Positions 24,394 to 54,388 are shown, counted from the stretch's first letter. The stretch: DNA of 64,000 bases from Kudoa neothunni (GCA_964304625.1 OZ199839.1:11513036-11577035), one strand, 5' to 3'. The notes: generated by a model not told the origin, from the letters alone. Numbers and translations are program-made.

Positions 24394-26747
24394 ATGGGAG
24401 GTGGAATTAAATATTCAAAACAAGTAGCAATATTCCATCCCTATTGGTGTCTAATATTTTGTTTTCTTAAAGTAAGAGGAATTTTATTTAGCAATAACCA
24501 CAAAAATGTTACATAATAGTTTTTTCAGTCTAGCCTATTTCTCTTTCTAGAATTGTTTATAAAAAACAAATTGTAAGGCAGTGATTCTGGTCACGTATTT
24601 AGAATTCAAATTCAAAATCTTTAATCTATTTTGAAGCGTTATGAAACATCTTACCCAAATAATTATTTACAATGTATTATTGTTATCACCATTTTCGGCG
24701 GAAGGAAACAAAAATATAGAGGTAATTGTTAAAGTATTATTATTCTTCGAACTGTATAAATAATAATTACAGCATGGAATTAACGTATTCCAATCTCCAT
24801 CGATCAATTGGATAAAATGTATGAGAGACATGAAATTCCTCATCATGACAAAAAATGGTTCACCAAATTGAATATGCGTATTGACTCCCAGTTAAGTATT
24901 TAATTTCGAATATAAACACTAAAGTTTTATCTTTAAAAATAATTTAGTTCTCTTATACACACATAATAATTTATTTAATAATATTAGATGAAAAACGAGG
25001 TAAATATATGCATAATTATTTTATACGAAAATAATTATAAATAACTTTTTTTAAATATAAAAAAATAAAATAAATTTACTTTATATCAAATTTTATCAAA
25101 AAATATTATTTTTGATTACATTTCTCTAATAGAGCGTTCGTATGGCGATAAGACAGAAGAGATACTTTTCCGTTTGTGTAGCTGGGAAACTAATAATGAC
25201 CCCCTAAAATTTCATTTGTTCTATATCTATTCGCTGGATTTCAAATATAAGTAAAACTCATTATATTTAATATAAAAAAATCTAGATCGCTTAATTAAGG
25301 TACAATGACGATCAATTCAATGAGATTATTGAAAAAGATAAGGACAAAATTTATCAGCTTGAGCATTTGACAGTGCTCACGTTTAACCAACTGAAATTAA
25401 ATGAAACTTCGAGTGGACTATTAGAGTTGCTGCACCAAAAATTACAATTTTGAAGAATCAGTGACAATTTTATTTTAACAATTATGATACAATATTATTA
25501 ATAGAAGATGGTAAAAAATCATTTATTTATTTGACATACTCTGAATTTTCCATCGGAATATTTACCAATAATCTCGACCAATACGACAATTGGATGATGA
25601 GAGAATTTTCGGTTAGGAATCAAAAGTTCACCGCGATTGGAAACAACTTTTATTGTATGGGTGGATTCACAATCTTATTTGCAACACATCACAAGTTGTA
25701 TAATGTATAGGTTTTATTGATTAATCGATAATCACATTATTCTTTGAATCTAGGAAGCAAACCAATCTCAAACGAGTGACCAAAAAATCATTCATCCCTG
25801 TTACGTTAATGGTATACAAGAAATTTTTGACCCTAATAGGAGTGGAGAAAACTGCAGACAACGATTAATATCAGAATATAGAAAAACATACATTGGGAAA
25901 TATGACCTGAACGCCTGCATTAACTTAATTTCTTCAGTTATTCACGATTCAGATTTTAAGACTTGTGGTACTGAAAAACGCTGTAACTTTTCAAGTCTAA
26001 AGAAGGGAATCTTTCCTAGTGATGTCAACGAAGTCATGGTATAAGTAAAATAAATATATGAGTCACAAGAAATGTAGATATACAATGATCATTTCAGTTT
26101 TGATGGTCAGTCGCTTGATTCACTTAAAAAGGAATTGATTCATCATTGGGATCGAAATTGTGTGCTTACTTCGAATGAGGCATACCAAATTTTAAATAAG
26201 ATATGATAAATATTAAATTTTAATGTGGTTGCTTCCATTTGAATGTCATTTTCACGTTATTAAGCGATCCCTTATTAAAGAATAATGAATTAGTCATATC
26301 CTTGACAAAAATGTACATTATTAAATTTAATTTCCATTCATAAAAGGTCGATTGATTACCCCATATCACATTTTCACCATATATTTTTCGATCCATTATA
26401 TGCTTCTATAGTTGTAGATGATGAGAAAATATCAATGTGAATTGTAAATGTGTTTGTGGCCAATTTTGTTTAGAATTGATTTTCAAACTAAAGCTCATTC
26501 TTCATTATATATCAGTTTGGAGTATACGACAGAAACCTGGATAGAACATGAATCTAGCGTTTCAACATTATCATTCAGAGAAGATGGAACCCAACAAAAA
26601 TTCGTTCTATTTTCAATCCGAGTTAAATCGTTTAAAATTCTAACTACGGAATTAACAATTTTTATTCTAGTCTCACAATTTGCGTTGGTTTATGTGGTAT
26701 GCAAAATTCGGCGATTAAACTCAAAAAGTTTGGGCAAAAATTATTAA
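24394..26747 (+). pseudogene. GDA1/CD39 (E-NTPDase)-like gene, paralog A; apyrase conserved regions (ACRs) degenerate, with stops and frameshifts
   Basis: Ordered CD39 landmarks: hydrophobic N-terminus; ACR1-position CKAVILVTYLEFKFKIF; HGINVF; ACR3-position FDSAHV*PTEIK*NFEW; ACR4-position FIYLTYSEFSIGIF; FSVRNQKFTAIGNNFYCMG; IHPCYVNG..C..YIGKYDLNACINLI..C....RCNF; YQCEL*MCLW; TWIE; C-terminal TM (ORF 26448). Confidence 0.75.
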
Positions 26748-27227
26748 TAATTAATATCATATGTATTTCTCGTTAAAGTAGATTATTTAACCAAAAAGTG
26801 TATGACTGTATATTTTTTTGTTTGCACGTTCGAAATACATTATTGAATTGTTGTTGCCCAATTTTAGTATATTTTAAAGGAAGCTGTTCTAAATTTTTTA
26901 TATAGAGAATAATATTTTATTCGAATAAACTATTTTTTAGCAAAAATTTGGTATCAATTATGAAAATATATATTATAAAATCTTTCAACACTTATTTTAA
27001 AGTTTACGTTTTGAAATAATGTTAGAATCGAATTATTCCTCCAAATTCTGTACAATTGTTATATACCGTTTCAATTTAAATAAGGTTTATTTTTAGCACC
27101 GTTCAGTTAACTTTACTAATACTAATACATTCCAAATATATTTTTAATTCTTCGTATATAGATTATTAAAAAAATAAATGTAATATATTTATTCGGAAAA
27201 TGTTATATGGTTTGACAGATTACATAC

Positions 27228-27259
27228 TAGTAATGTGAGTGGTTACACTCACATTACTA
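27228..27259. repeat. Perfect 14-bp hairpin
   Basis: TAGTAATGTGAGTG-GTTA-CACTCACATTACTA. Confidence 0.9.
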
Positions 27260-27496
27260 ATCCCCATAAAACCTTACAAGGCATAAGTCACCAATTCTTT
27301 GGCAACGCACAAAATTAAAACAATTGATTTTAAAAGTAGAAAATGTAACTGCTATGTATTTTAATTTAATTTCTACCTTAATTTATTTTTTTACCATAAC
27401 GAGTTAATATAGAATTCATTTTGAACAATAAACACATCTTTTGGATGAATAATTAAGTAGAAATTTAACTATAATAATAAAATATTGTAAAGGAAA

Positions 27497-27769
27497 TTAC
27501 TCAGTTATAGTAATATTTTTAAGTTTTCTGGCATTTATACTGCGTATTTCTCGTTCAAAATCCGTTTGATGTTTACTACTATTTAAACCATGATATTTCA
27601 AGCAATGTCTTAAATCAGAAAAATGAGCGAGAGGCAATTCTGAATGGAATAATTTTTCGTTTTCTATCGTCAAATTTACGAAATTTGTCATCTCTGTGAC
27701 GGTTACCATCTTACCATCACTTATGAAAACATTAATGTTGGAGTCATTTCCATTATTGTTTGCGCCCAT
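27497..27769 (-). other. Unassigned 90-aa ORF or exon
   Basis: Open frame with protein-like composition and no recognised motif. Confidence 0.25.
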
Positions 27770-29200
27770 GCCTTCGCTGGTTTTGGAAAAATTTTATTAT
27801 TTTATATTTCTCAATTAACGGCCTAACTCAATTTTTATTTCTGTCCTTCATTTCGTCACCAATTGAAAACAAAAATCTCAACGCGTCTGAAAAGTTACGA
27901 ACCACACGTCGCTTCTAAATATCCATAAAAAACATAATTAATTACAAAATTTTTTATTTATATTCATAATAGTTAAAGAAATGTTTTGAAAAGTTAAAGA
28001 GATAAATAATTTATTATAATCATATATGTAAATTAATTTTTAAATATTTCTTCAAATTACGAACCGCACGTGTTACACTGAATGTCAACGACTTCTAAAT
28101 TATATTTATTACTTTATGATAATCAAAATAGTCTGTAATATTTTTAGAATATAATGGCACATTAGAATTCAAACTTTCAAAATTAAACAATATTTTAGTT
28201 TTTTGTGGTCGAATTTTCTACAAAATCCAGCCATATGAGCTTAACTAAAGCATAAATATCTACCAAAAAAATATATAAACTAAACATCTTATTTTATCAT
28301 AATAAACCATAATCAAATTTATTTATTTTATTAAAAAGAACAGCAAAATAATTGGTGATGAAAAGATTAAAACAAATGCGCAAAAAGGTGTATTTAGATG
28401 CGACAGGTTCTACAAATACCTAATATCTTCTATTATTAACTCGGATCTTTCTAACCTATCAAGAAGGAAAATATCTGATTAATTATAGACAATGATAAGT
28501 AACGATTCAAATCCTAATATAATACAGACTTAACTAACACTGTTAGGGAATGAATCAGAAGGTTTCATAAAATTTACAATTAAATTTTGTGGGAATTTAG
28601 TAATCCTGTCCAACATCTATAATAGTAAAAAAATTATTGTAAACGAATAGACGAAAATAAGCTAAGTTTAGCGATAGAAATGAAATAAACGTGCCCTTTA
28701 CAAAAACCACAGTGTTTTTCTTTCTCCCATAGTTATGTACGGTTTTTTTCTTTTGAGTCTACATATTCATAGTTAATAGATATACCAATATTTTTAATTT
28801 AAGTTGCAAAAGCTCAACTTTATTAATTAATAAATAGTAAAAATTGTTTATACATCAACTAAACAATTCTCTAAGTAGAATTTCAAAAATGCGTGCTTAT
28901 ATGACATTGTTTATGTTCGATTAACTGGAACTAAAATTGCTGGTCCAAAATTTTTCAGATAATCGTGGTTCGACTGACTGCATATCGAGAGAAAACTAGA
29001 TTGAAATAAAAAAATTATATAAATTTTTCAAAAAAACTAGGCGAAGTTTAAGAATTTTGTGAAAATAGTAAATTTGTGGTGATTGGCTAAATATCCTACC
29101 TTTTTAAATAGAATAATGACATTAATTAAATCATAAATGTGTTTCTAAGACAAAATAAATATGGAATTGTTTCGTCTACATCTACATCTACATACTGAAA

Positions 29201-29388
29201 TATAGTAAGTCGAAAATAAATCAACGGCATCGAATCAGGTACTCTAAATTAGATTGATTTATTGAGAAAACAATTTATAAGATCAGCGCACACACGATTA
29301 CTCGACTTGGTTAACACAGCTAAGTAAACAAATAGCGGGCATCTTACCGGTGATTGTAATACAACCAATGCAATACACACCTCTAACA
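29201..29388 (-). mobile_element. Possible solo LTR
   Basis: The minus strand starts TGTTAG, contains AATAAA and ends ACTATA (a CA would be mutated). Flanks are CTGAAA/TTGAAA. Confidence 0.35.
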
Positions 29389-29397
29389 TTGAAATTA

Positions 29398-31786: not shown

Positions 31787-31805
31787 GCTCGATAGTGTCC
31801 TGATC

Positions 31806-33443: not shown

Positions 33444-34914
33444 ATGAAACTGTGCTTTTTCAAAATATTTGTTGTGCTATATTTCCCAAATTTGTTTGCA
33501 GGTATATAAACATATTCATCATATTCTGATAATATGTTAGATCCCATATTACCCTCTTACGAAAGAGATGAGGGAGATTGGCCTGTCGGTGTACAAATAA
33601 GTATGGACAATGTCATTGATAGATGGTTCATTGACATCCAAGATGCTAAATGCAAACCTCTCGAATACCGAGGTATCAAAGGAAACTATAATAATTTCGC
33701 CTCAAAGGGACTATGTGAACTTCACGGTATTTTTCTAAATTAGTGTAAATTTCTGATAATATCTTGCAGGAACGTTGACAACAAAAGAAAAAATTCAAGG
33801 ATGCAAAAAACCCATGCATCCAGGACATTGCGTAAAAAACACACAAACAAGTAATCAATTCTACTTTGATCAAACAAACGCCAAATGTGTTTCGTTCCCA
33901 TATAATGGATGTGGGGGGAGCTTTAATCGTTACATTGATGAAAAAGAATGCAAATTATATTGCTTAAGTAAAAAAATATGAACATTTCCATTGGACTAAA
34001 TAATTTTTGTAGATAAAAGGAATGGCGGGCTTACAAATTCTGATGATGACAAAATAAAAGCAGCCGATCCTGAGATCATATTCGCAGTACCAAATACATT
34101 GGATTGCGAACTTAGACCTGATGTTAAAGACAAAGATCCAAACACAGCAATTATTGCTGATAGAGAGAAAAACAAGTGTGCTTATGCAGCAGTCTCATTA
34201 GACTCAAACACAAGAGGGATATTCAATTCGTTTGGCGAATGTGTCAAAACATGTTTTCGTATAATTATTATTCATAATATCTTCGTCTTACATAATCTAG
34301 CATATCCAAATACACAATCTACTGGTGATGGTGTAACGCAATATAACAGGAGAATAGCTGCATGCGACATTGGTCCAACTCAAGTTGCTATAGATAACCC
34401 AGATGACCCATCAGCTGATATTGAGTTCCGATATTATTATGATCGTGAGAGAAAAGTGTGTAAACGCATGGAAACCAAACGAGCTACAGTATCATCCGTC
34501 TTTGTTCCAACAAAAAATGATTTTCCAACTATGGAAATGTGTCATAGTTATTGCGGAGCGGGTACTTACGTTGATTCATTAAAAAAATTAAATTATAAAG
34601 TCTTTCTATGGTTATATCGGATTAAAAATTATTTTGAATTCGGAATAAATTTAGAAAAGTATAAAAAAGAAATTGTGATCGAAGAAACCTGCGTTAAAGA
34701 CAAAATGGGTGAAATCGGCAAAAACGAAAATGCATTCAAAGTTAAAAGATTCTATTATGATGCATCTAATAAGAAATGCAAAGCTTTTTATTACAAAGGA
34801 TATGATGGGAACTCTAACAATTTTAAAACGGGGAATGAATGCATGGCGATCTGTGGTGGTCATTACAACAATGGAGACCCAATTATTGTAGAGGATATTC
34901 CTCAAACAGTATAG
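33444..34914 (+). CDS. Secreted multi-Kunitz/BPTI protein (5 domains, about 402 aa, 6 exons)
   Basis: Signal-peptide-like MKLCFFKIFVVLYFPNLFA. Exons 33444-33501, 33541-33726, 33770-33967, 34013-34258, 34301-34561 and 34655-34914 sum to 1209 nt in frame. Kunitz motifs RF/YYD..C..F.Y.G..GN.NNF....C...C are present. Confidence 0.92.
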
Positions 34915-35505: not shown

Positions 35506-36104
35506 TGCCAGGAAATTACTAACGTTTAGGGTAACTCAAACATAAATCGGCTACCTGTATGACAATAAACCATTAGACAATCACGTCATTATAACAACAG
35601 TAGCGCGAACTATTCAGTGTTGCTTGGGAGCGATTTCGCTTAGTGATGTTTCTTAATTATATTCAAAAAATATATTAATGTTTCAAATTAACTTATAGAA
35701 GCGGTAAAACTAAAAAAATTTAAAGGATCATAATTGAAGACTTGGATTTTTAAATTTTAATCCTGATCATTGTAGAACAAGGATGTACTAATCCCGGTGT
35801 TCTTTTAACGGTATCGTGGCGTGGTCCGGCGATAAATAATTTAAGGTCTGCATCATACTTTTCTGCATTCTCAATTTATATAAATTACCGTAAACTGTCT
35901 TACAAAACGTCATTTTCCCCCCGGGGATTTTTCAAAGCCGATTCTGATCCGGCTCAAAAAGTTTAAGCCACACTTTTTGGGTAAGTAACCAAAGATATAA
36001 AGATAGAACAAAATCTAGGAAATTGATTTTTATTACTCAAATTAATCTCTTGGTCTGGCACCAACTTCAGTGCCCTCTTTCTCAAAAACACATAAAAATC
36101 GTGT

Positions 36105-36318
36105 CAATATCAACCTAATTATTTTAAATAATAAGGAATATAAATAAACCGCTCGCACTGAATTTAATCATTGAAAATTCAACTTTACGATCGATTTCAA
36201 CTAAATCTAAGCAATATCAACCTAATTATTTTAAATAATAAGGAATATAAATAAACCGCTCGCACTGAATTTAATCATTGAAAATTCAACTTTACGATCG
36301 ATTTCAACTAAATCTAAG
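36105..36318. repeat. Perfect 107-bp tandem duplication
   Basis: 36105-36211 is identical to 36212-36318. Confidence 0.92.
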
Positions 36319-38199: not shown

Positions 38200-39072
38200 T
38201 TTTATTTATTTCTAGATCATCTTTCTTCATTACGACTACACAAGATTCGTTCAGCTTGAATCATATCAAATGCATGTATCGTATGATGAATCTAAAGATT
38301 CGATCAAATGGTTGTTAAATGCATTAGTTGATGCTGATCCTTTATTGATGACAAATTTATGAACAATAATAACAGTGAAATATCAATGCCTCTAAAAGTG
38401 CTTTAACATAACGTTTGAATCTATTTCCCTATTGATATGTATATGTAGGTTTCATCTCTGTCAAATTTCCAGCGTGAAATTAAATAGGAAAATATGGTAT
38501 CAATTCAGAATGGAAGCTCTTCTATGAACATTTTAAATTAAATAGTTTATATTATTAGTAAAGATCAATTTTATTCCTATGTGATAAATTATGTGGCACA
38601 GAGTCCCCAACGTCTCTATTTATTTTGATAAAATTAGGAACTCAATCGTAAACTAATGGATAATTGGCTTAGGTTCAGCCGAAAATTATAATAACTGCAA
38701 AAATTTTAGATTGGAATCAATAAATGGCAAAATTAGATGCATTATTAAAATTTTTCAGCTCCACATGAAATCTTAATATATTTCTTCAGTTACTTGAAAT
38801 CTATGAGAATTGAAAGAAAATTACCAATAATAATCGGGTTTTTAAAATCATATGTTACCATAACTAACAACGAAACTTTCAGGCATTACTATACTCATAG
38901 GAAACCCAACACATCTAATATTGTTTGGGAGGAATTATCCAAAATAAAAATTAGAAGGAGACTGAAGATAAGTAGAGCATTTGTTATTGGGCTCACCAAA
39001 AAACAATCAATAAAAGTCGAATTAATAATTTTTTTGGATAAAATTTGGATTTATGAATTAAAAAAATTGTGA
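38200..39072 (+). pseudogene. Degraded unknown intron-containing gene fragment
   Basis: Exon-like stretches are bounded by GT/AG and contain in-frame stops; includes ORF 38794. I recognised no family. Confidence 0.3.
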
Positions 39073-39141
39073 CTCATTGAATTTAATAAAACTAACATTT
39101 TAACAAATCAATAAAATTGTTTTCAAGAAAAATAACATAAA

Positions 39142-40240
39142 ATGTGGAAAATATTAAGATTACGACAAACAAAAGGTAAAAACATAGTTTCATTCAAAAA
39201 TACGAGGGAGTTCGGAAGCCTCGGTTTTTTTGCTATTTATAGCCATTGGAATCACTTGTGAAAAGTTAGCTGTTACCTGTGTCACATTAAAATTTGTAAC
39301 GTGCGAGTTGGTGGAAAATTTGAATTAATTGGCCAAGAATGTCGTAAATTAGCATTCATTACTATTATTAAATCAAGAAAAGTACGGTTTTGGTACATGT
39401 GAGATGATTAAGGTATGGTTTTAATAAACAAATTCTCCACTTTAAATTGAAAAAAAACTTTTACACATTTCTTGGAAAAAATATAATCGAATATATTTGT
39501 GGAATCAAATTTTTAATATCTCATTTATTCTAGAAGATATTCCCATCCATGCTTATAGTTAATCCCTAATGGGGATTAAATGGATCCATGAAAATAACCA
39601 CTTCCTTAACCAAATTCCTTTTGATAAATAATAATAAGTGTGGATTAAGATTATTAGAGGATATTCTTAAAGTGCTTGAGTATTTATTATCGGAATATAG
39701 AATTGACGATATTTTAATGTATTCGATTTGTATTTGTCTGAACAATTAATGAATTGTTCGAGTTTGGGGAAAATTTACATATATTATATATTTTGATAAT
39801 ATGCCACGAAAAAATTTCTTTGTTTGATTGGTACTTAGGTATGAATTCCATTCTCTAAGCTCATTGTTTCTAATTCGTATATTTGTTTATATTATATTAT
39901 TACGTCAAATCTTGGTTTTATAACTTTTTGTTGAATTTATTTCCCTTAGTGAAATTAAAAAATTAATTAATTTTTTTAAGAGTTGCAAATAATTTAAAAA
40001 TGAACGATTAACGCTGATAAAATACGAAAATAAAATGAGCCTACGGAATGGAGATGTTTTGTGGCAATTAGGATTCACACCATTGGACAGTCATAGGTAA
40101 TAACAGGACCTGTTAAATATTTCACTAAGATTTTTGTTACGTGTAATGTTTATTCCACCTTATAGGGAATCCCTTTGTTCAATTATTCATATTTTATATT
40201 GATACCTGTATTATCATGATCATCATCCGTGCTTAAAGTT
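39142..40240 (+). pseudogene. GDA1/CD39-like paralog B, internally deleted
   Basis: CEKLAVTCVTLKF (ACR1 position); GKFELIGQECRK (cf. CD39 QVEECRVK); KWIHENNHF (shared with paralog C at DNA level); HEKISLFDWYLGMNSIL (ACR3 position); KMSLRNGDVLWQLGF (ACR5 W.LG); then a hydrophobic tail. Confidence 0.6.
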
Positions 40241-41163
40241 TATTTTTAGCAGGTTAAAGACTTAACTGTAACATGTAAGCTTCAATTTGAGAGTATGGAT
40301 GCTTGTTGGATGATTGTATTTGTCTTTACTCATCAATTATTGATAAAATCGTCCAACGCTGGATCAACCATTAAACTATACGTAAAAACTTTATGAAAGA
40401 CTGATTTAAATTATTTATAGACTGGTATTACATTATTACTGAAAGATGGTCTGATTCACATAACACCATTCACATTTGAGAACAACATTTCAACTACTCA
40501 GAGTATTATTATTAAAATTCAAGATGGAGTGTGTTCATGTATCATCGTCTTTTTATAATTAAATTTCTAATATTCTTAAATTTTAGTGGAACATGTCAGT
40601 AATAATGATGAAATTCTGAGTGCCATAGGACAATGTTTACACCATTCCATACAAAAGTTTGGTCAAATTTATTTCTCACCTTCTTTTCTGCCTGAAGCCT
40701 ATTTTGTGTTTCCATCCACCTTTATGAATTCGATGTAAACAGTTATATATGTTTATAAAGTACATGTGGTAGTGCAAGGATACACGTCAGATTGTTGGGA
40801 TTAAAATAATAGTTAAGTAAATTTGTTTAATGCGATAACCACAGTAAGCGTCTTCAATGATTGAATCATGCATTACCCCCGCAATCAGTTAAAAAATAAT
40901 GTATATTTCAATTTTCCGATAATGTTATCGTGGTTAGCCCATAAAAAAGGATAAGATTTGTGTTTTAATTTTTCTTGTTTTAAAATTCTTCTCATTGTAG
41001 ACAAATAATTAAAATATACAAATATCTAATAGAGATATCATATCTGGATGTTTTTAACCCTCCATGTAAACGAAAATAAGGCATCCTTAGAGTAAAATAG
41101 TGAAATGATAAAATAGAGTGCATTTAGATCCAAGAGACTTTTCTCTTTAATTTATTGACTTAA

Positions 41164-43822
41164 TCCTCTAAGGTGAGCGAAAACGACCATCCTCCAAAGT
41201 CACTTGAGGTCCAAACGACCCAAGTTTTTTATTCGATGAATTAACTTAATAAATAAAGATATAAGGTTTTATTAAGTTTAGAATATTTCTGTCGAATAAA
41301 TTTTAAAGAAAAAGCCGAACACTTGTGTAATTAATCCGTTACTATCTCATCCGTGCCATGTCAGGTTGAATCGAAAGTAATTGTTGTATAAAACCGTTGA
41401 TGAATAATCTTATATTTTTAATAAATAAACAATTCAAGTGAATTGACTTAATGATTAATATTTTTATGGAAAATTTTAAATTTCATATTTAAGTTATTGT
41501 TCAAGAGAGTATTTCTACTCAGCTCGAATAGTTCCCCCGATCAAAAGGTGCCTGCACAAAAAATGAATAAAACTGATAAATATGTTGATTAATATAAATC
41601 TTTGACAAGTAAATTTGTAGATAACTCTACGGAATCATCTGAAACGTTCATTAAATCGGTGGATGTGAAAATACTGAGGACTCAATAATCAGTAAAAGCG
41701 GCATTGTGTGGGGTTTTAGTAAACCGATAACGTCAAGAAAAGGCTCGGCAATACCATGAAAACACCGCCTAGCCCTACTTCGTATTTTACTCAGCAGTTT
41801 GAAAGCATGTTAGTTTGCTTTCATCCTATGTACTATCATAATTTTTTGAATAAATAATCTAATATATCAATTTTATGAAGATTTCATTTCAGAGGTGATT
41901 GAATTCTATTAATAAATTTCTCCAAATAGATTATATTTACTTTTTACGATTCTATAAATGTATTTTATGTGTGTAAATGGAAGTTTGCCATATCTATTTT
42001 AATTAGCGGTCACCTGTGAATAATTAAATTCTTACAAAAAATAAACATTAATTAATTTTATAAAATTTTTATTACATTCTATGTAAGTAAAATGAATAAC
42101 ACAATCGAACCTGGATATTAAGCAATTTTTTGGGAATGGAAATAAATTACACAATGGGGAGATTTTACGCAATACAGGCTATTAGCGCGAGCGCGTTACG
42201 TATAAAAAACAAAAATTTATTCGGGTTTAAAATTTAAAATTACCGGTAATTTCAGTTTGTTTGCATTAATTTTTGATTATATTAAATAGGAACTCCATAA
42301 CTGGATGTGTTTTGAAAATAATGCTGTTGAGTTTTTGAACATAAAAGTTTTATAATTAAATTATTTGAATATTTGAGTTCCGCAATTGACACAAGCGTTT
42401 TATCTTTTACAAGGTTTGGATTGATATTTCATTAAATCTATCTACTATATGCGCTTCAGTTAAAGCTATTGATTCTCCGTTTCTTCAATGTTGTTGATTT
42501 CGTCATAATTTTTTATCGAAAAATTAAAGTTGATAAACAATTAAATAATGTGTCAAATTTTTCAACATTTTTTCGGAAAAATCATGATTTAAGTTTTCAT
42601 TATCAAATAATGTTTAATTTAATATTTTGGAGAGTTAAAATACAAGGTTCAAAAAGTCTAGATTCTCTTAAGAAATTTTAAGTGATAGTCGTTGATACGC
42701 TTTCCGTTGCATGTTTTAAAGTTTAAATAAAACCAAAATGATATTCTTAAATAAATTTGAGTTATTCATATTTATTATGTTTCACTATTTCTATCCTAGT
42801 GACATTGTTGGGAATTTTCCCAAAAAATTAATCATAGTTTGATTATTTACATTGTTGGTTTCACCATAAAATTTTTTATAATTAATTCCAAGCCTATGTT
42901 TAAATCCCAAGAACCAAACATTACTACCGGTGAAATTGTCTATGTTTATGGATTTAACGTTATTTTTGTCTTTTTCACGATGACGTAGATGACGTAAGCA
43001 AGCACAACTTTTTTCTCATTTGCATTTTAGCTATCCATGTAAAGAATAAACTATCTAACTCTGTGTACTTGTCTTCATTTATTTTTTTTTTGAAGCCGAA
43101 ATAGTAGAATTAATGATATCAATTTGGAAAGCTAAAATTATATTAATAATAGGGCGCCTTGAAAATATATTATATTTTGTTTCGATAATTTTATATTATT
43201 AGATGGTTTAGGATGTTTAAAGATCGTTGCATTTTCTCCTTTGAGTGATTTAATCGAATTATAATATTCGATAATTTCAATTTTTTCAGCCACCGTTCGC
43301 TAATTCCTTAACATTTTTTTGCAAAATTCAAAAATAGGATTAATTGAGGATGGAAGTGGACTAGATGTTACGCAGTAGCGAGATTTTAGTTTTAACGATA
43401 TATCTTAAATTTATATTTCTCTAATAAACATTTTCATCTTTTTTCGCTCCGGTAACATTAATTTAAATAATATACAAGCAAAGTGTAAGTAAACAATTTA
43501 AAACATCCGTTATATTTCAACAAACTTGAGAAATTACGCAATATCCAGCTTCGACTGTACTTGTTTAACTACACTCTTATTTATTCTTAGAATATATTGA
43601 CTACAAAACGTCGTGGGTTAAATTGGACCACTAAAGTCCTTAAAGGATAATATTTTTTCAACACCTAATTTTTATTCAATCGGTTTAAGATTTTAAAAGA
43701 ATGAAAAATATTCAAAAATAGGATATTAAATAGAATTTCACGAATTTCTGATTATTACATACATAATACCTGGTAAATTAATCATGATTTGAGGCCTAAT
43801 AGACCTCAACGTCCTTAACGGG
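41164..43822 (+). mobile_element. Non-autonomous piggyBac element, copy 2, carrying a nested insertion
   Basis: Termini are TTAA|TCCTCTAAGG ... CCTTAACGGG|TTAA. The N-terminal remnant reads ISKSGIVW...TPPSPTSY. It is homologous to 9439-10602 on both sides of the insert. Confidence 0.85.
42102..43557. mobile_element. pogo/Tigger-type TIR element nested in piggyBac copy 2
   Basis: TIRs are CAATCGAACCTGGATATT ... AATATCCAGCTTCGACTG|TA. The segment is absent from copy 1. Confidence 0.8.
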
Positions 43823-45107
43823 TTAATGTCTTATTACATGTTTAAAATTTTTTGTACAAAATACGCATGGTTTTGACGATAATTTCACATTGAAATATTC
43901 CCCAGCACGGACACGTTATTGCTAAATGCAGAGGTCACAAAATTTTTTGATTTTCATAAGCTTTTAGGGTTGGATTAAAATTTTTTTGAAGAACAGTTGT
44001 AAAATGAAACAAAAGTAATATAAATATAAAAAATAATGAATATGTATTTGTATGTGAACGTGATTATAACAGGAAATTGAGTCATGTGACAGAATTTAGT
44101 ATATTTCCGTTTTGAGACACCCTATGGGAGATCGGACCATCCGTCGTCTACCGTATAATACCAAAAAAATCGTGATTTTATGTATATTTGTGATTATAAA
44201 CAAGAATTACAATTTTTTCGAGAATAAAATTCACAGTTTATTAATTTTATCATACTCAAATTGTGTAGATTCTAATAAGAAGTTCATTATTCGAGTTTTA
44301 AATATTTTTATTATTTCTTTTCTATCCAACACTCTGAGATAAGTAAATAATTTTGTAAAATACTGTATATGATGCTATAAAATATCTAAGGAACGGTTAT
44401 TATTGCCCATCATTTAAATTGCTATTATCAAATCAATTAAACCCAATCAGATAAAAATTAGAGATATTTGATTTAATTGAATAAGCTTAAACAATTTCAA
44501 ATTTAAAACTCTTAGGAATATAGGAATCAAATAAAAATTAACACATATATCATCGATTTGTACATTTTACATTTAGGACCTTGCTATACTAGTGAGTCGA
44601 TTTTCTCTTCTGTTTCAATTAAAATAAAATAAAAATAAAAAGGAGATTAAGTGTGGATTTTTAATCAATACTCATATAATAAAATAATGCATTGATAGTC
44701 TTTAAGTAAGTTAACACAACTTCACGTGCGTAAGCGTATTCGAGTGTTAGGAGGTTCACCGCGGGTCGGATTAAATGTATCGGAGGTCTGGATTTGGCCC
44801 ACAGTCCGTATTTTCGTGGCCACCGCCAAATGCTAATAAGATTTGAGAATCGTTCATTTCAAAATAACTTATTAATTCGAATAATTAAGATATTTATCAT
44901 AAAAATATCTCTTTATTTTTGGTAATATCTTTAATCGTAACATTGGATTTCCCGATCATTATGAGATATTTTGCAATAACGTAATATTATTTTGTAATAA
45001 TTATTAAATTCTATAAATTAAAGTGATTTTTATATAAATTTTTGTCACAAATGAAGATAGACTTAAACTCTGTGCTAAGAAAAATTTTCAATACCACAAA
45101 ACTAATG

Positions 45108-45948
45108 CAATCAAAACTCGATTATACGGGAAATTTGGAACCAGCGATTTTCACTCCAGATAGCGAGGTTCCGGTTAATCGAATGCAGAAGCTATTTGCA
45201 TAATTAAATTTAATCCTAAACGTCAAGTCCGCTTGTACAAAAAGAAATTTTAATCTAAGCAACTCAAACTTACAAGTTGTTTATAGGTTTAATTTTTTAG
45301 AATCTGCTATATTTAATTATTTCCGGTCCCTAAGAGCGGAACTGTTGATCGGAAAGAATTAAATATAGGCAAAACTAATGCCACCAGAATATTATTTATC
45401 GTGGCAACTGCACGATTGGGTTATTGAAATTTCTACTTAAAGAATTTTTTATTTGATTTATAGATAATTTGGCTTTTAAAATTTAAATTAAATATAATGG
45501 CATATCTATTAACCAATAACATGGAGACTTAAAGAAAAAACAGTACATAATTAAAGAAGGAAAACACGTCTACAAAGAAGTAATCCACTTATTTAAATAA
45601 TCGGTAGCTAATGTTTATTTAAAATAAATACATGTTTACCTTCAAACTAGTATCAATTTATATAAGAACTGAATGCTTAACTTAAATTTTAAATGAGAAA
45701 TTTATGAATAATTAACCTAGAAGTATTTTTGTTTAAAATATTGCATTGGTATATATGTTACATTGTATATATCGGGAGTAGATTGGTGGTACTTTTATCC
45801 AGAATTATGATTAAATAGCTGTTCCAATTTTAGATTATCGAAATTCCGGATAATCGAATATTTATCAACACGTAATTTCAATAAAATCCAAATAAAATTT
45901 AAAATATCTTCTGTATAGTGCGAATTCAAGATTATCGAGGTTGGCCTG
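45108..45948. mobile_element. Degenerate pogo/Tigger-type MITE
   Basis: Termini are CAATCAAAACTCGATTAT ... GATTATCGAGGTTGGCCTG|TA, with subterminal CCGGATAATCGA-like repeats. Confidence 0.6.
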
Positions 45949-47399
45949 TATTAGTAATAGCGAAATAATTTATTTATTTATTATTTTGTTACTCTGTGTT
46001 TTTATGTATTTTGAATAAAATAGAATTAACACAGTGAGAGCCATTAATCCGTCCAAGTTTAAATGGTGTTAATATTTTGGCTCTTTCTCGTTTTTTGTTT
46101 CTGCCCGATAGAGATAATTTCAATTCTATTTTTAAAGAAGAGAAAATGACTGCAGGCAGTTTAATTTAAATTAAGGTAAATCATTTGTTTTGTTAAGTCT
46201 GTTGAAATGATGCATACAAATGATGTTGAGATAAAAATCATTTTTTATATACTTGGATATGCAAACATGTTTTATTTTAATGACATTTTTTGATGTCTTC
46301 ACCATTGGTCATCTTATCGAGAATTTTAAAATATATCATCCCATATTTATTCATGGTCGATTCAACCTGAATATTTATACATCGTTCAAATGTAACAATG
46401 AAATGACAAAATATTTCTAGCTGAGCTCTCCCTTAACTATCTCATATCCGAAAATGAGACCTCAATTTTAAATTTTAAATATTTATCTTTTGTTTCTTAT
46501 TCAAATTTCATGGTCTTTGGCATATGTGAATCTCGTTTTAATGATAGATTCATAGTTTCTTCTCTTAGGAATCTGGATAGTGGATTTAATAATGTAAAGG
46601 GAGTTGCATATAATCCTATAAACTGCGCGTAGGTTTGTCTAAATTCTAAACTTTTCGTTTATTGTTCTTATGTGATTGTTCAGTCGTAATAGGAAATTAC
46701 AGTCTATCAAAGATAAAATATTCAATTTTCTATCATCTCCATGCTTCTGAATCTTTACTACGCCTTTTTTATTGTAATATAATGAAAGCGTCTCAACAGC
46801 TTAAAAATTATCCTTTAAAATATTATTTATTATCAATACATTCTTATCATTTTTTAAACTAATTTTTGAGTGTATTAAACCTTGTTTTAAACTATGAGAA
46901 TAGCTGAAATTCTAAATGAACTGAAAATTCGTAGTAGAAGTTATGTAAGGATTAACTTTCATCTGTGGATTAAAAGACCCCAAAATTGTTAGAGGGTTAA
47001 CCATCCCTGAATGGACTCAGAAAAAATCACGCCCTGTCCGAGGTGGGACCACAGTAGAAACTTACTTTAATCAACTCTTCATATTTCTAAACATAAATTT
47101 TATGATATTTGGAAAATTGATAAATTCAGCAATGAAGCTTTTAGCTCATGTGGGGTAGAAAATGCGAATATTTATGAGTTAAGGCATCACGCAAGTATGC
47201 AAAGTTATGCGCATAAAAATTTAATCAACTAAACATTAAAAAGAATATATAGCAATTAAATTAAATATATGTTATTGCTGAGAAATGGATATTAAATGTT
47301 ACCACTGAAACTCGCATTACCACCACGCCAAGCACAAAACATTCGTTTATCATAGGTTAAAGGAGGTTACGTAACTCGAATTCGAGATTTTCTAATTAA

Positions 47400-50010
47400 C
47401 CTTGCGATTAAGCGTATCAATGATGAATTCATAAAAGTATACAAATTTTTAATTATACCGCATGCTTATGCTGCATTCTTCGTTTTCTCCGATCGTTGTT
47501 ATCCTTCGTTTGAATATTGGATGTTAATTAATCATTTTATTTTTAGCATATAGAAAAAGCAAAATAACCATACCCCAAAATATTACAACAAACATTTAAG
47601 AAATAATCCTTATGTAAGACAACTGCTTAAATAATAAAATTGTCTTTTTTTAAAACAGGATTTAATGCTAGACGTTAAATAATTTAATTTCCCCCACAGA
47701 ATTATAGTTTTTCGTTTCAAAGTGATACAGAACTAAAGATGCAATAAAATCAGTGTGTCAAAAATAGCGCTTACATAATTACATTGAGTAAGATCTATAA
47801 AATGGTTGTTTAAAAAGAAACTATTTGTTGCACTCGGTACATAGAATAATATTTTTTTGACCCAATATTTTGCGCACACGAATTTTCGACAATTGAAACA
47901 TATTAGCTTTGTTTTCTTGTCGACATTTCTTGGTCACAAGGGACATCGTTTTCTATTTGGAAATTGTGGTAAATCTTATTTTGTTGATTAATTATTATAA
48001 TCATCATTATCCTCGAAATGGCTAAAACCATACTTTATATAGCTTGGTATTTTCTCAGAATTTGTTTGGCGACGAAAAACATTTTCCCTAACCAAATCAA
48101 CGGATAGCTCTCTAATAAAATGTTGTTTCCTGCTCTTATTATTATTTTATCATTCAGGATATTTTGTAGTAAATAAAGTATATGAGTTTAAAACTGCATT
48201 GTCTAGCAGATCCACAAAAATTTTCACTGGCCACCTGCGTGTTGGTTTTGAACAGGAATATAGCACAGTCATTTTATCCGCTATATCGACACTGCCGTTT
48301 GTTTTATTGTAATGAATAATTACATTAGGTCGTTTTCTCTCCTCATTTTCAATCGAACTGTCGTTATGCTCGGTTGGGAGAAGAGAAGGTTCACAACGTA
48401 ACTTGTTTTGGTTACATGAGACCAAAGTGAGGTCTCCATGAAATCCAAAAATTGACGAGAAAACCTTACACCTAGGATTATTGAGGGATCCTTTAGGAAT
48501 CTCGCGTTTGTTGTGACGGATAGTTCCAGTCAAAGTTATTTTATTTGAAAATAGTTCCTGGGCGAGTGGAAGAGAAGCAAAAAATTTGCTGATTGTAACT
48601 CCTCGACATGTGTCGTAAAAAGGTGAAATATGGTCTTTTACTACCCTTACACCTTGGTTCATCTCTTTTAATCCACCAACCATTCTCTTATAAGACTGTA
48701 TGTTTAGAAGATATGATGTTTTCACATCTTTGACCACCCATAATTTGATGCCATAACTACCTGGCTTAGACTTCATATATACTCGGAAGGGGCATTTCTC
48801 TCTAAATTTCACCGACCTTTTATCCACAATGATATAGGGTCCCGGCCAAAAATTTTTCAGACAATTATTATTGAAAGATTGAAAAACGTTTCAGATCTCC
48901 TCGAAATTATCATTGGAAATTTTTTTTACGTTAAGTTTTTGTAGCTTTATCATCAAATCGCAACACTTGATAAATTTGTGCGAATCGATCACTCGAAATC
49001 GCTGCCGAAAAAAATTGTTTAAATAATGGATGCTATCCCACACAATTCGAAGTGCAAGAGATGATACATTCGAGCGACTGGAAGCGAGGAAATCACCCAG
49101 AAAGCCTTTAACTCCTCTACCGTTAGTTTGTTACCGTTAAAACCTTTATATTTCTCACAATAATTATTCGTGCGTTGCATTAACTCATCAAGAATATCAC
49201 GACTAAAAAAAATCCCAATTCTTCAGAGATAGTTTTATATTACCCATTTTCTCAATAAATGTAGAGGAAGGGAATGAAATTTTATGTGAGCGCTTTTTGT
49301 TCCCATGCGATGCTTCAAATTCCATTGAAAACCACATCGAGAAATTACAATGTCAGAATTTTCGTTCCAAGTGAAACAATTCAAATCATCGTCTGATCCA
49401 TTATTTTCAGATTGGCTACTTAAATTTTCCAGGAAATCGTCAGTTGATGTATCAACAGATTCAGGGAACTCGTAGTCAGACTCTCTATCAATGTCATTAG
49501 AATAATTGTCAATTAGTTTTTTCTGCTTTGCCGTACATAATGTTTTACAAACATTAAATAATAAAAGTTTATCATAACGTTCAAAAAATTAAGTTTCGCT
49601 TTAAAATGTAAAACAACCAACACAGAACAATAAGCGCATTATTAGTGAGCCGTGATCACATTAATTTTTGCTTATCTCAGATAATACTGATTATTGCAGT
49701 TAAAATTGATATCTACATTGAAATATAGGTATATAATCGATATAAAAATGTTTAAAATAATAAAAAATAATTACATCAATTTGGAAAGTGTTTTATGTAT
49801 AATGTTGTATACAATTAACAACATACAATTTTAAATATTAAAAATTTTCATGTTTCTAATAAAAACTTAAATATATAACTATATTAAAATAAGAACCATA
49901 TCGCCAAAAAAGCATTAACAGGAATAAATGAGGAGAAAATTGTTTTTTAGAAGATATGGAGAAAAAATGTCTTTGGGGTCAATGAGTGACCTCACCTCTT
50001 ACAGCCAGGG
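47400..50010 (-). mobile_element. Near full-length piggyBac element with a pseudogenised transposase (PGBD4-like)
   Basis: ORF 48150-48827 has CPFRVYMKSKPGSYGIKLW, GTIRHNKREIP and YNKTNGSVD. An acidic N-terminus lies near 49500 and a Cys-rich C-terminus near 47850-47950. The terminus CCAGGG|TTAA is at 50010. The left boundary is uncertain. Confidence 0.9.
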
Positions 50011-50014
50011 TTAA

Positions 50015-50470
50015 CACCATGACCTCGATTATGTTTCATCTTATAAAAACATGCACTCGTCTATTTCCACAATTACTCCTTCTCCACCAAGTATGATGTC
50101 TTCAAAATCCAAACTCTCAGCCACCGTTTGTCGACGATAGTGACTGTAATTAGTGATTGTTTGGGGAAGAATGGCCAGTAATTGTGAGCAGAATTATAGA
50201 TTTTACGCCAACCAACCAATAGTAAACTAACTCCAAGAAATCATTAACTTTTAGTTTCATGTTATTAAAAAAAGTTGATTCCAATATTGAAACTCCTTTT
50301 CTACAGTTTTTTAAGCAGCATAGCCAGTTTTTTTGATGAAGCGAAAATCTAGCTTCTTCGCACTTAATGCGATTTGTCGGTTCTTTAAGATTATTATTAT
50401 CAATAAGGTATTTATTAGCGTTATGTTCATTTTCAAAAATTCCATCAGACGACTTCCTCGGTGATATCGT
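50015..50470 (-). mobile_element. Merlin (IS1016/ISXO2-like) transposase 5' fragment, cut off at the piggyBac TTAA
   Basis: Minus strand reads KNWLCCLKNCRKGVSILESTFF...LELVYYW and ILGGEGVIVEIDECMF..KHNRGH, matching the Merlin IGG.G.IVEIDES...KYNRG motif. Confidence 0.85.
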
Positions 50471-50779
50471 TTCTAGCAGGACGTAACTAATCTGGGGTTT
50501 GTCCTTAAGTAATCTGCATTGTGTACCGCATCCCGTTGATGAAGTAATATTATACAGTACGATAATTCTATCATGTTACATGGTATTTCATAATATATCG
50601 AACACATTTTAAAAATAATCGGACACGCGACATAAACAACAAGATTTTTTTCAGTCAAGTTAAAATAATTTATTTTTTTTTGTGATTAATTAGTTTTATG
50701 AAATTATGGTATAGTTTTGTTGATATATTATTAGGGCATAATGGGCGAAAGAAAAAAATAAAAAGCAATCGACCAAACA

Positions 50780-51730
50780 TTATATGATCAAATTGAATGA
50801 CTCCTAAAACGAGAGTCCATAAAAAAGTTCCGAAATTACTGATTTGGTAAGGTCCCAAATATATAAAATCAAATCTTTTATTGAGACCAACCCAGAAGCC
50901 CACAGCTACGATGCATTTGCACAAAAAAAGAGACGTCATCCAAAAATTAACACGATTCTCAAAAACAAAGTGAGAGAAATCGTTGGCCGAGATAACAGCC
51001 TAACAAGTGTCGGCATAAAAAAAACTATTCGCGAGGGAAGAATCGAACCTATCCAACGGTTCTGTACGTCGACTGACAAAATCCGCTGGACTAACGAGAA
51101 AACGGATTAAACTAAAGGCCTCCGTTATTTTGACGGATTCTCACAAAAGAACGGAAGCAGAATATGCTTCCAAAATTATAGGTGTGAGGAGGAAAAACAT
51201 TGTTTTTTGGATGAATGGGGACTTAATCTCCACGTATCGAATAATTATGGTTACTCGGAACCCAACAAAGAAGCTATCGCCATGGTACGCCCTTCTAGGG
51301 GACGAAATATATCGCTACGCACTATTATTTCAACTCAAGGAATAATTGGCCATAAAATTCTGGATGGTGGATTTGATAGGACTCAATTTCTTGTATTTCT
51401 CGAACAAATGATTTTAGAACGAAAAATCTCTTCTGAAGTTGTTCTTGTCAAGGATAACATTAGGTTTCTTCACGTACAAGAGGGAAAAAGGCTGATGAGT
51501 ACTAACTCAACTGAATGCCTATATTTGCCATCGTATTCTCGTCAGGTAAACCCTATTGAACACGTGTTTTCTGTTTTGAAGGAAAAAGTCTCAAGTTATC
51601 CCCCAAGAATCCAAAGTAGAGATGTTACGGTTTATTATATCTTAAAATCCATGGATTAATTTAACCAAAACGACTCTCAATTATTTTTGAAATTTTTCAA
51701 AAAAAATTGGACAATGTATATGAAGGGTTA
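50780..51730 (+). mobile_element. IS630/Tc1-like transposase pseudogene (DD34E)
   Basis: Frameshifted ORFs 50844, 51130 and 51207 carry DEWGLNL, RGRNIS and DNIRF...YLPSYSRQVNPIE, with 34 residues between D2 and E. Confidence 0.88.
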
Positions 51731-51970
51731 AACAATTAAATAAAACAATATTAGCTATTTTCCTTATTTTCTAGTTTATATGTATGACCAGTATTGTTTC
51801 TTAATTTCAAATTGTCTAACGCTTGTTTGATTAATTAAAATGTTGTTGTGATATTTTAAATAATGTGTAATCATTTAAAAATTTTAATTTTATATATCAA
51901 CTTACCGAGAAACTACTAGAGAAATCAATGCAGAACAACTTATATCACTCTGCTTGGTAAAAATAAATAA

Positions 51971-54388
51971 ATGAGTTTAAATTAAGACATATAGGCTTAC
52001 AATTAGATTTAAACCCATGGGCTCTTGTATTTATATGCGCTGTATTTACTAACAGGCGTCTTAAAAATATTTCTCGTACCTCAGATTAAAGTGAATACAC
52101 TGGTAGGAAAAATACAACTAAAATACCCCGAAATTGTGGCGCAATCATCTAGATACATCCGAAAAGTGGTTTAAGTCGATTTAAAAAAATTTGAATCCAA
52201 TTGATAGCCATTAATTAACGACAATTTTTTTAAATTCATATTAAAAAATGTTTAAGACAGAAACGTACATGTGTCGTAAATGATTGGGGATGACTTATTC
52301 AAGTTAAACTGCGCACATTGAGACATATTTTATTAAAAGTTTCTACCTACCACTTGATGTGTTTACGTTTCATTTCAATTATAATTTATATATTACATAA
52401 TATTAGATTCAAAAAATGTGATTGTACTTCTTGAACAATATAAATAGGGCAGACAAGATGATTAATTTTTGTTCTTAGAATTTTTTACTAACTTTTGCAT
52501 AATAAATTAGATTAAAAATTGTTATATTAAAGTAAGAAATCATATTTAAAATATTTTCTCTAATGGAGGAGTTATTTGTTTCCAGGAGAGGAGCCAGTCC
52601 AGAGAAGGGACTAAATGGATCCATGAGGACAGCCACTGTCTTCTTCATATTAACCCTGCACTACTCATTTGTATTTTAAGTTGACTCAAATATTCATTAT
52701 AGTTCCTGGAAAAACACTTGGATATCCATTTTAGTTTCCAATAAAGCCTGGCACATAAATCGCGAAATTTTACTTAAACAAACCAGTATAATTCCTACCT
52801 CTTATTTTGAAGGATTGGTCCATTATGTTTCTGCGAATTACCTCTACTTGAGTCGGGTATATCCACATATTCTAGTGTGCTGAAGGTGTAAAATGGATTT
52901 GTTGACATTAAGAAAATGCTATAATAATGTTTTAGAATCAGAATATAGCTTCTATAGTGTATATTCAAAACGATGGATTAATTTTTGGAACGCTTTCTAA
53001 TAATCCAACCAAAACTTCGGAATCGACATTTTTCCTACGTCTTCATGGAATGGAGTTTTATGTCCTCACAGAAAATTGTTACTGCTATGGGTTGAATATG
53101 CTGAGATATTTGATTCACTTTAAGTTACTCACAGTAATAGAGAAATATTTAAAACCAAAAATATGTTTATAAATTGTAGGATGCAGTCAGACATGATGAT
53201 CACGACACAAATGATAAGCTGACAATCCTTGACCCATGCATTTTAAATTCGAAAGTTCCGATAAATTACCATTTTGATAGTAATTATATTTGTTACAACA
53301 CGAAGAAAATAAATGAGAACATAAAATTTGATTATATGATATATGGCCAATTTGAACCAGAACGCTGCATCTACTTGATGTATTTGGTACTAAGTGACGA
53401 GAACCTGAGTCCAAAAAATAGCCAATGTGCTTTAAAGCAATTAAATATAATTTTTAAGCAAAAATCAGGTATTAAGGTATTCAGATATTTGACTGATAAT
53501 GATTTATTGGAAAATAATTCTTCTGTCATAATCCATTTAGTTAGTATATGATTTGAATGTCAAATTAACGGACGATGAAACAGATATGAACTTATTGATG
53601 TCAAAAATCAACACAATATGTAGTACAACAACCAAAACCGAAATGAACTACGTAAAATCATGTCGAATAATATCTTTTTAACTAATAGATGTTACTAGCC
53701 TACCGAGATAAACAATAAGTGTTTTCTACTCATGTATATGTACGTCATTATCGCGTTACATACAAAATCTGAATCTAAATACCCAATTTTGTTTTCACCA
53801 ACGATCCATAATAGTATGTATGGTATGTTCTTGTTTGACCCTAGGTCGCACGTTTTCGGTTCTCCGTCAGTGTTTGAATCGCTCAGAGAATTAGAATTAG
53901 TAAATAAATTAGGATAATTTATTCTATATATATTTGATGTATAGCCCTCATCAAGCGTCGAGGAAGAAGTGTGGGATTCATCAACCACTCAAGAAACGGT
54001 GTTGGACTCATCGAGTGCTGAAGAAGAGACGACAATAACACCAAGTGTTGAGGAAGAGACTTTGTACTCTTCAAGCACGGAGAAAGTGAGTAAGGTTCCA
54101 TTCATTACATCAACTATACCACCATCAAAACACATTGCGTCTGTTGAAGAACCTTCCAAATATATTCCCTCTAGTTTTACAGTAGTTGAAACCGTTTTAG
54201 TTCCTTTTCAACCCGATAAAATTCTTATTTTGGATATCAACATTAAAACAAAGCTTGATACCTTGGATCGATATACTAGCACTGCCGGGTTTGTTATTTG
54301 TGCAGTAGCGGTGGCGGTAATGATGGTCACGTTGTGGTTTTTGGTCAAGACATCAAAACCTAATCGAAGCAATAATAGGAATCCATAA
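51971..54388 (+). pseudogene. GDA1/CD39-like paralog C with a Ser/Thr/Glu-rich stalk and C-terminal TM; 3' two-thirds intact, 5' part with lesions
   Basis: NPWALVFICAVF; KWIHEDSHCLLHINPALLI (ACR2 position); IIPTSYFEGLVHYVSANYLY (ACR3, EG kept); SVYIQNDGLIFG (ACR4 position); LRLHGMEFYVLTENCYCYG; ILDPC..C..YMIYG...C...NSQCA; ICS; KCFLLMYM; then ORF 53969 with the stalk, TM AGFVICAVAVAVMMVTLWFLV and a short basic tail. Confidence 0.78.

Follow-up and report, generated by a model that had tools for sequence, protein, structure and literature searches.

A Probable CD39-Derived Surface Protein Family with Replaced Catalytic Motifs in the Myxozoan Fish Parasite Kudoa neothunni

Introduction

Can a parasite keep and multiply the fold of an ecto-nucleotidase after giving up the residues that make it an enzyme? 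The question is raised by a stretch of 64,000 nucleotides of the Kudoa neothunni genome (G000:C2:11513036-11577035; hereafter the window, whose own numbering is used unless a scaffold is named), in which an original prediction had proposed three co-oriented genes, A, B and C, with the landmarks of cell-surface NTPDases (GDA1/CD39 family, PF01150) and with remodelled catalytic motifs. Kudoa neothunni is a myxozoan fish parasite found in tuna muscle, and myxozoans are economically important parasites of fish. To our knowledge, most myxozoan lineage-specific genes are unexplained, and the way in which these animals avoid host immunity is little understood. A family with a recognisable ancestry and lost catalytic loops that amounts to about 1% of the genes would provide testable candidates for the host interface.

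The explanation that we regard as probable is that the window holds two members of a large CD39-derived family, which has been catalytically disarmed and would face the host at the parasite surface. One member, locus A, is considered dead, and the other, a split gene that we call B'+C, is intact on paper.

The window lies about 0.5 Mb off the end of the chromosome-scale scaffold C2 (12.04 Mb), has a GC content of about 27-30% and belongs to a genome assembly of 40,260,978 bases in four contigs (17.15, 12.04 and 11.05 Mb plus 18.2 kb). The curated assembly, obtained from yellowfin-tuna data, has been described as 40.2 Mb long (N50 12.0 Mb; 30.4% GC; quality value, QV, 48.5), with a circular mitochondrion next to three chromosome scaffolds, 5,316 predicted proteins and introns whose median length is 49 bp; the genome paper makes no mention of gene families, nucleoside or paralogues (PMC12239612). 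In the literature we found no paper on catalytically inactive GDA1/CD39 members or on any myxozoan NTPDase family. Homology searches were run exon by exon, using three alignments: 23 copies of the Cys-rich exon (A1), ten canonical NTPDases (A2) and 15 paralogues over the exon of apyrase conserved region 4 (ACR4; A3).

Results

Descent from CD39-Type NTPDases

Two stop-free pieces of the window, 25754-26041 in locus A and 53180-53548 in locus C, bear the Cys pattern of cell-surface NTPDases. In both loci the landmarks follow the CD39 order that had been predicted for them, with HPC, CMG, G....C and CNFS at 25505-26038 in A and DPC, CYG, G....C and CA at 52936-53476 in C. The Cys exon has at least 57 paralogues in the genome, and the landmarks exceed what chance would give. 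Across the 23 paralogues of A1 three cysteines are invariant and more are nearly so, in a register that matches rat NTPDase1 (3zx0) and vertebrate NTPDase3. Profile-profile comparison of A1 with A2 by hhalign placed the exon at NTPDase positions 286-370 (97%, E 1e-10). In the reverse direction, the hidden Markov model (HMM) of the canonical NTPDases matched the Cys exon in 17 paralogues or more with E-values from 3e-11 to 7e-4, all at one position, and when all six-frame pieces of the window were searched with the same HMM the top three were the Cys exon of A (2.3e-6), the ACR4 exon of C and the Cys exon of C. Against the PDB the top match of the Cys-exon profile was rat NTPDase1, with the cysteines in register (E 0.22). 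In a search of 1.84 billion representatives, eight of the ten single-stretch matches that were checked in Pfam turned out to be GDA1_CD39 at model positions of about 204-302, and five were above the gathering score. For the C-lobe, descent from the CD39-type (NTPDase1/2/3/8) ecto-NTPDases of the cell surface is well supported by these alignments.

The rest of the ectodomain can be followed from exon to exon. At least 15 paralogues keep the exon 5' of the Cys exon. Its alignment covers the NTPDase stretch that begins with DLGG and ends with CYG (positions 225-284; hhalign E 0.0044 with all copies and 6e-5 with the C-type copies), and exon 8 (CF.L..IY.LLSD) aligns to positions 426-445/459 (E 0.006 and 0.02). 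The best local alignment of exon 2 is to the KYGIVL strand directly before DAGSS (60-65, E 0.04), with another at 73-97; that of exon 3 is to positions 109-124, and that of a trimmed exon 4 is to EGxxxxxxNYL, which corresponds to ACR3 (187-199, E 0.38). The best-match positions of exons 2, 3 and 4 are colinear with the exon order. Furthermore, when an AF2 model of the ACR3+ACR4 exon of one paralogue was submitted to Foldseek, the top 48 PDB matches were all NTPDases. Descent of the whole ectodomain from a CD39-type NTPDase is supported by this colinearity, and the GDA1/CD39 ancestry proposed at the outset is strengthened by the profile-profile, reverse HMM, Foldseek and colinear-exon results alike.

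The same genome also encodes a canonical NTPDase of the same superfamily (G000:C2:7278745-7279569, L001). Unlike the family, this gene retains DAGS, ATAG, the ACR3 Glu and ELGGAS, and it scores 119 bits on PF01150. The Cys-exon profile of the family matches it only barely (E ~0.02), which indicates that the family is not a recent copy of L001; its closest sequence matches are of the CD39/NTPDase3 type.

Replacement of the Catalytic Motifs

In the known NTPDase structures, the ASKHA loops ACR1 and ACR4 hold the phosphates. At ACR4, where canonical enzymes carry DLGG(A/G)S, none of the 15 paralogues of A3 has DxGG; they read, for example, LTYSEFSIG or YIQNDGLIFG, and the A-type copies share the conserved substitute F[SFT][IV]G.FT.NP. 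The ACR1 motif DxGS/T is not kept either: after a conserved (K)YGIxL strand six aligned paralogues read KNQLF, MDTSE, KKMTT, LKDG, LKDT and IHDN, and locus A reads QSPSI, in an alignment that is positional and weak (E 0.04). ATAG(M/L)R of ACR2 gives way to YSLDFKY in A and PSTFMNS in C, at a site that is placed by colinearity and is not statistically significant. At ACR3 the C copy has FEGLVHYVSANYL, aligned to EGlygwItxNYL (E 0.38); this FEG....ANYL contains a Glu that may be equivalent to the catalytic Glu, and the A-type copies read NE.SSGL.ELL. The site colinear with ACR5 (W.LG) reads MYGMFLFD in C and DPLYASIV in A, in a non-significant alignment. The replacement residues are unlike between the A-type and C-type subfamilies.

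The phosphate-loop motifs are replaced in every paralogue examined, which argues for a loss that is old and family-wide rather than for the decay of single copies. The replacement of the catalytic motifs had been predicted from the window, and it extends over the family, where other conserved residues stand in their place. The prediction had also envisaged that intact paralogues might carry canonical motifs, so that the loss would be decay that followed pseudogenisation. This refuting outcome did not arise: DLGG occurs in none of the 15 paralogues at ACR4, and the genome has only one canonical NTPDase gene. With both phosphate loops and ACR2 replaced, we infer from the known role of these loops that canonical nucleotide hydrolysis has been lost in the family, and tight nucleotide binding has probably been lost too.

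Locus A, a Pseudogene

Instead of three co-oriented genes the window contains two loci of the family, one pseudogene and one split gene, and all of the exons described here lie on the plus strand. Locus A extends over 24641-26747 and has ten exons; introns 3-9 measure 34-49 nt, and introns 1 and 2 measure 51 and ~240-275 nt. A start at 24394, as proposed earlier, found no support. The first exon (24641..24721) begins at 24641 with a start codon and a signal-peptide-like hydrophobic N-terminus, has a 'MKHL...' start in common with paralogue L014 and is followed by a GTAATT donor at 24722. Exon 2 (24773..24890, 3' border approximate) encodes the ACR1-equivalent strand; exon 3 (25133..25250, with an AG acceptor and a GTAAAA donor, and matched by at least ten paralogues) encodes the C..CxW segment and the ACR2-equivalent strand; and exon 4 (25300..25460) encodes the ACR3-equivalent helix. 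Exon 5 (25505..25704), which corresponds to NTPDase 225-284 and is matched by at least 15 paralogues, runs through the ACR4-equivalent strands to CMG with the DLGG loop replaced, and exon 6 (25754..26038) is the Cys-rich exon of the C-lobe (HPC...C...G.Y....C...C....CNFS). Exons 7 and 8 occupy 26078..26312, exon 8 being CFHLNVIFTLLSD, which aligns to NTPDase 426-445. Exons 9 and 10 (26347-26436 and 26474-26747), with canonical splice sites and fitting phases, supply the ACR5-equivalent, a short stalk, a transmembrane (TM) helix and the basic tail that follows this hydrophobic helix, up to the stop codon at 26745-26747.

Three lesions interrupt this gene. Near 24818-24823 exon 2 contains a one-base frame change, and its halves match L009, L014 and L021 in two different frames. 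Exon 4 has an in-frame TGA at 25451-25453, where eight paralogues are open, and no GT-AG intron could remove it without deleting the conserved SSGLLELL. The intron between exons 7 and 8 (~26180-26223) has neither a GT donor nor an AG acceptor; a clean GT-AG intron of ~40 nt is present in L012, L015, L017 and L020. At QV 48.5 (PMC12239612), three errors within 2.1 kb cannot credibly be put down to the assembly, and locus A is, to judge from them, a young pseudogene. The turnover that had been proposed for these genes has an example here.

The Split Gene B'+C and Its Long Intron

Exons 1-3 of the second locus (40295-40381, 40421-40538 and 40587-40734) match the 5' exons of the C-type paralogues L004 and L006, with GT-AG at all junctions. 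They encode a signal-peptide-like start, an ACR1-equivalent hairpin with LKDG for DAGS and an ACR2-equivalent strand with PSTFMN for ATAGMR. Exons 4-9 (52703-52856, 52936-53133, 53180-53476, 53541-53651, 53699-53899 and 53945-54388) have GT-AG junctions, fitting phases and no internal stop, and they provide, in order, the ACR3-like FEG....ANYL, the ACR4-equivalent to CYG, the Cys-rich exon, a CF..Y helix, the ACR5-equivalent, an S/T/E-rich stalk, the TM helix and the stop. As in A, the hydrophobic helix gives way to a basic tail, and the frame closes with a stop codon at 54386-54388. Exon 3 ends in phase 2 at a GTAAAC donor, and exon 4 begins at 52703 with a phase-2 acceptor. Since C is without 5' exons of its own, B' is without 3' exons of its own and the phases match, the two parts are most simply explained as one gene with a transposon-swollen intron, which would count nine exons, 1758 nt, 585 codons and eight GT-AG junctions without a stop and would be intact on paper. 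The start at 51971 formerly assigned to C lies inside a dispersed repeat and has no support; the true 5' exons are those at 40295-40734.

Intron 3 (40735..52702) is 11,968 bases long, against a genome median of 49 (PMC12239612), and carries copies from no fewer than four families of dispersed repeats. Pfam identifies in it remnants of a piggyBac-like DDE_Tnp_1_7 at 48153-48890 on the minus strand and of a Tc1/mariner-like DDE_3 at 51111-51656 on the plus strand. The other genome copies of these repeats are 74-88% identical.

Decayed transposase remnants were seen in the window at 48153-49588 (minus strand) and at 16685-16993, 50823-51656 and 56575-57360 (plus strand), belonging to the piggyBac-like DDE_Tnp_1_7 and to the Tc1/mariner-like DDE_3 and HTH_Tnp_Tc3; these transposons have many genome copies at 74-88% identity. 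Two copies of another repeat, at 9463-10607 and 41186-43827, share several segments of 70-190 nt in the same order at 77-81% identity, and the second copy sits within the long intron of B'+C.

Locus B, placed at 39142..40240 on the plus strand, was rejected as a family member, for it has no likeness to any paralogue or to the family profile. Its first ~470 bases, to ~39615, belong to a dispersed repeat of ~0.9 kb (38700-39615) that is present 40 times or more (69-80% identity), and unique DNA upstream of exon 1 of B' follows. The hydrophobic C-terminal segment claimed for all three genes is found in A and C, exactly at the ends that had been given for them (26747 and 54388), and B drops out. 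Copying of the A and C exons within the window was also rejected, as there is no long internal repeat.

Past the end of the window (G000:C2:11577036-11605035; L028, L029), after a gap of 200 N, the window segment 24816-32615 recurs at 100% identity, pseudogene A included. In the same stretch 38700-46936 appears again at 100% (C2:11591013-11599249) and, after another gap of 200 N, 54839-60423 at 99.7%. Unpurged haplotypes or a redundant assembly would seem to account for these copies better than a biological duplication; haplotypic duplication is mentioned in the genome paper (PMC12239612).

Size, Distribution and Selection of the Family

Genome searches with the Cys exon gave 21 matches for the A copy and five for the C copy, nearly all in open frames. 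With the 23-copy profile the number rose to 59 matches, which merge into 57 loci, so that the expansion predicted from the window is confirmed with a family of at least 57 loci, or ~1% of the predicted proteins (5,316; PMC12239612). The paralogues are 15-56% identical in amino acids. Within 1 Mb of a scaffold end lie 25 of the 57 loci, a three-fold enrichment over the 8.5 expected, and 26 loci have a neighbour at 50 kb or less.

On the Cys exon, two older tandem pairs whose dS approaches saturation gave a ratio of nonsynonymous to synonymous substitution rates (dN/dS) of 0.21 and 0.33. A single young pair gave 2.1, a value based on too few changes and not significant. The invariant cysteines, the open exons, the canonical splice sites and the dN/dS of 0.21-0.33 in the older pairs support the view, already put forward with the prediction, that the scaffold is under selection.

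A search of public collections yielded no full-length family protein, but fragments of 80-91 aa from one ENA metagenome. In this metagenome (ERZ28624939, sample SAMEA5316497) two short contigs, L033 and L034, encode the family fragments P0001 and P0007. The DNA that could be aligned, no more than 95 and 127 bases, is ~80% identical to that of K. neothunni paralogues. This level of identity points to a related myxozoan with the same family in that sample.

Discussion

We propose that the product of an intact family gene would be a type I membrane protein. A short, hydrophobic and probably cleaved signal peptide would precede an NTPDase-derived ectodomain of ~400 residues, which would retain its core strands, a scaffold of disulfides in the membrane-distal lobe and the ACR3-like EG....NYL helix; a variable stalk, S/T/E-rich in C, would lead to a single membrane helix at the C-terminus, with a short basic tail behind it. 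With ACR1 DxGS, ACR2 ATAG and ACR4 DLGG replaced by other residues conserved in the family, canonical hydrolysis would be lost. Such proteins would most likely serve at the surface or in adhesion, as a repertoire that faces the host without catalysis and is under birth-and-death turnover, a role suggested by the architecture, the copy number, the position near scaffold ends and the divergence.

The Kudoa proteins resemble the cell-surface ecto-NTPDases (NTPDase1/CD39, 2, 3 and 8; PF01150) in the order of the structural elements, in the register of the C-lobe Cys pattern (xPC...C...G....C...C....C.F, CYG and CF..Y..LL) and, as predicted for the Kudoa side, in being extracellular and anchored to the membrane by a C-terminal helix. 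They differ from them in the absence of the ACR1, ACR2 and ACR4 motifs from the copies examined, in an N-terminus that looks like a cleavable signal peptide instead of a second membrane anchor, and in the stalk before the membrane; furthermore, the family is below Pfam detection and has ~57 copies, whereas other animals have a handful. Secreted or surface ecto-NTPDases of other parasites are likewise GDA1/CD39 proteins at the host interface, a location that is conjectural for Kudoa, but they are described as active enzymes (PMC8630654), whereas the Kudoa family is without the catalytic loops.

A parallel in biology is offered by the multigene membrane families of Sphaerospora molnari, proposed in a 2026 preprint to serve immune evasion: these too are expanded, lineage-specific, single-pass, myxozoan and read as host-interface proteins, but they are VSP-, RIFIN/STEVOR- and ETRAMP-like, and NTPDase, CD39, apyrase and GDA1 appear nowhere in the text (bioRxiv 10.64898/2026.02.11.705288). 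With parasite multigene surface families in general the Kudoa genes share a large diverged repertoire that includes a pseudogene (at least 57 loci at 15-56% identity, and locus A), together with clustering and scaffold-end enrichment (25/57 against 8.5, and 26 loci with a close neighbour, uncorrected for tandem clusters).

Several observations weigh against the explanation that we favour. The N-lobe exons are singly non-significant (E 0.04-0.6) and are assigned by colinearity, and the VIA-align Z of the ACR3+ACR4 fragment model is at most 2.9, level with unrelated folds. Non-colinear hhalign placements of A-type exons 3, 4, 7 and 9 and of C-type exon 7 (E 0.14-0.8) speak neither for nor against it. 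The Cys exon alone gave a poor AlphaFold model (pLDDT 63) and no Foldseek match, a result that is uninformative, as is an ESM Atlas look-up of a 96-aa exon fragment, which returned low-scoring bacterial clusters only. The Pfam check suggested with the original prediction failed: PF01150 had no match on ten exon pieces (E up to 1), and a six-frame scan of the genome recovered the single canonical NTPDase gene at C2:7.28 Mb and none of the family loci. The test of scaffold-end enrichment ignores tandem clustering, parasite transcript reads are almost nil in the genome paper (PMC12239612), and the 12 kb intron is ~240 times the genome median, so that B'+C may be dead.

Standard Pfam annotation passes over this family, and that blindness, along with the many multi-stretch matches of the large profile search that look like composition artefacts, could speak for a CD39 resemblance that a lineage-specific family, rich in Cys and biased towards AT, acquired by chance or by convergence. 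Such an origin is hardly credible and already contradicted by the hhalign match (97%, E 1e-10), by the reverse HMM hits to at least 17 paralogues at one position, by the colinear exons and by a Foldseek search whose top 48 matches are NTPDases. If the ancestry is accepted, the proteins might still bind or hydrolyse nucleotides by means of unconventional residues and serve as an atypical ecto-apyrase, or else as a decoy that sequesters ATP and ADP from host purinergic signalling. The ACR3-like FEG....ANYL of the C-type copy, with its glutamate, speaks for this idea, and parasite ecto-NTPDases are widely described as modulating host responses (PMC8630654). We consider it very improbable, given that both ASKHA phosphate loops and ACR2 are replaced in every aligned copy, which would be expected to impair binding, and that the replacing residues differ between the A-type and C-type copies.

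The same non-catalytic derivatives could instead work inside the parasite. They might, for example, act in the secretory pathway or among plasmodial cells, or contribute to the structure or adhesion of spore valves or polar capsules. A signal peptide, an ectodomain and a membrane helix fit lumenal or cell-cell roles equally well, and purifying selection of 0.2-0.3 in the older pairs is unlike an antigen under strong diversifying selection; but ~57 highly diverged copies, clustered, enriched at scaffold ends and with pseudogenes among them, form a pattern more usual in repertoires for host interaction than among structural proteins, and an internal role seems unlikely to us. More serious, though still doubtful, is the view that both loci of the window are dead and that transposons have destroyed a gene here and left B' and C as its stranded halves, the family being functional elsewhere. 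An intron of 11.97 kb where the median is 49 bp, with at least four repeat families, a pseudogene as neighbour and a repeat-rich region near a scaffold end are all in keeping with it. However, lesions like those of A would be expected in a dead gene of any age, and in B'+C the nine exons are open over 1758 nt without a stop, the eight junctions are GT-AG and the phases match across the long intron.

A CD39-derived, disarmed and host-facing family, with A dead and B'+C intact on paper, thus remains the explanation that we prefer. It would illustrate clearly how an enzyme fold can be re-used as a scaffold, and the window would give a dated picture of its turnover, with one pseudogene and one gene whose intron took up 12 kb of transposons. 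A bolder and speculative extension, which we rate as rather unlikely, is that the dead ecto-ATPase scaffold forms the main variable coat of Kudoa, a variably expressed sub-terminal repertoire of ~60 CD39-fold proteins with which it would evade immunity or make contact with host cells in the muscle of fish. Among animal parasites this would, if true, be the first antigen-family-like system made from a pseudoenzyme of the purinergic pathway.

Other Features of the Window

An isolated relic at 20866..20961 on the plus strand, of ~30 codons, resembles the second half of a C-type exon 2 (HMM E 3.9e-5; BLASTP 7e-4 to L006), and no family exons were found next to it. Between the two NTPDase-like loci, at 34000-34911 on the plus strand, a 304-codon open frame encodes a Pfam Kunitz/BPTI domain (E 2e-13) and more Cys-rich segments, making its product a candidate secreted protease inhibitor. 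An Rfam scan of the window gave no match. The best identity of an intronless HSP70 in the protein collection was 79%, which fits a fast-evolving lineage without proteins in that collection. A Strongyloides-like nematode origin, to which the shape of the introns had pointed, was rejected on this lack of a close HSP70 relative and on the agreement of the assembly figures with those published for K. neothunni. At 36096-36309 a unit of 107 nt is present in two tandem copies of 96% identity.

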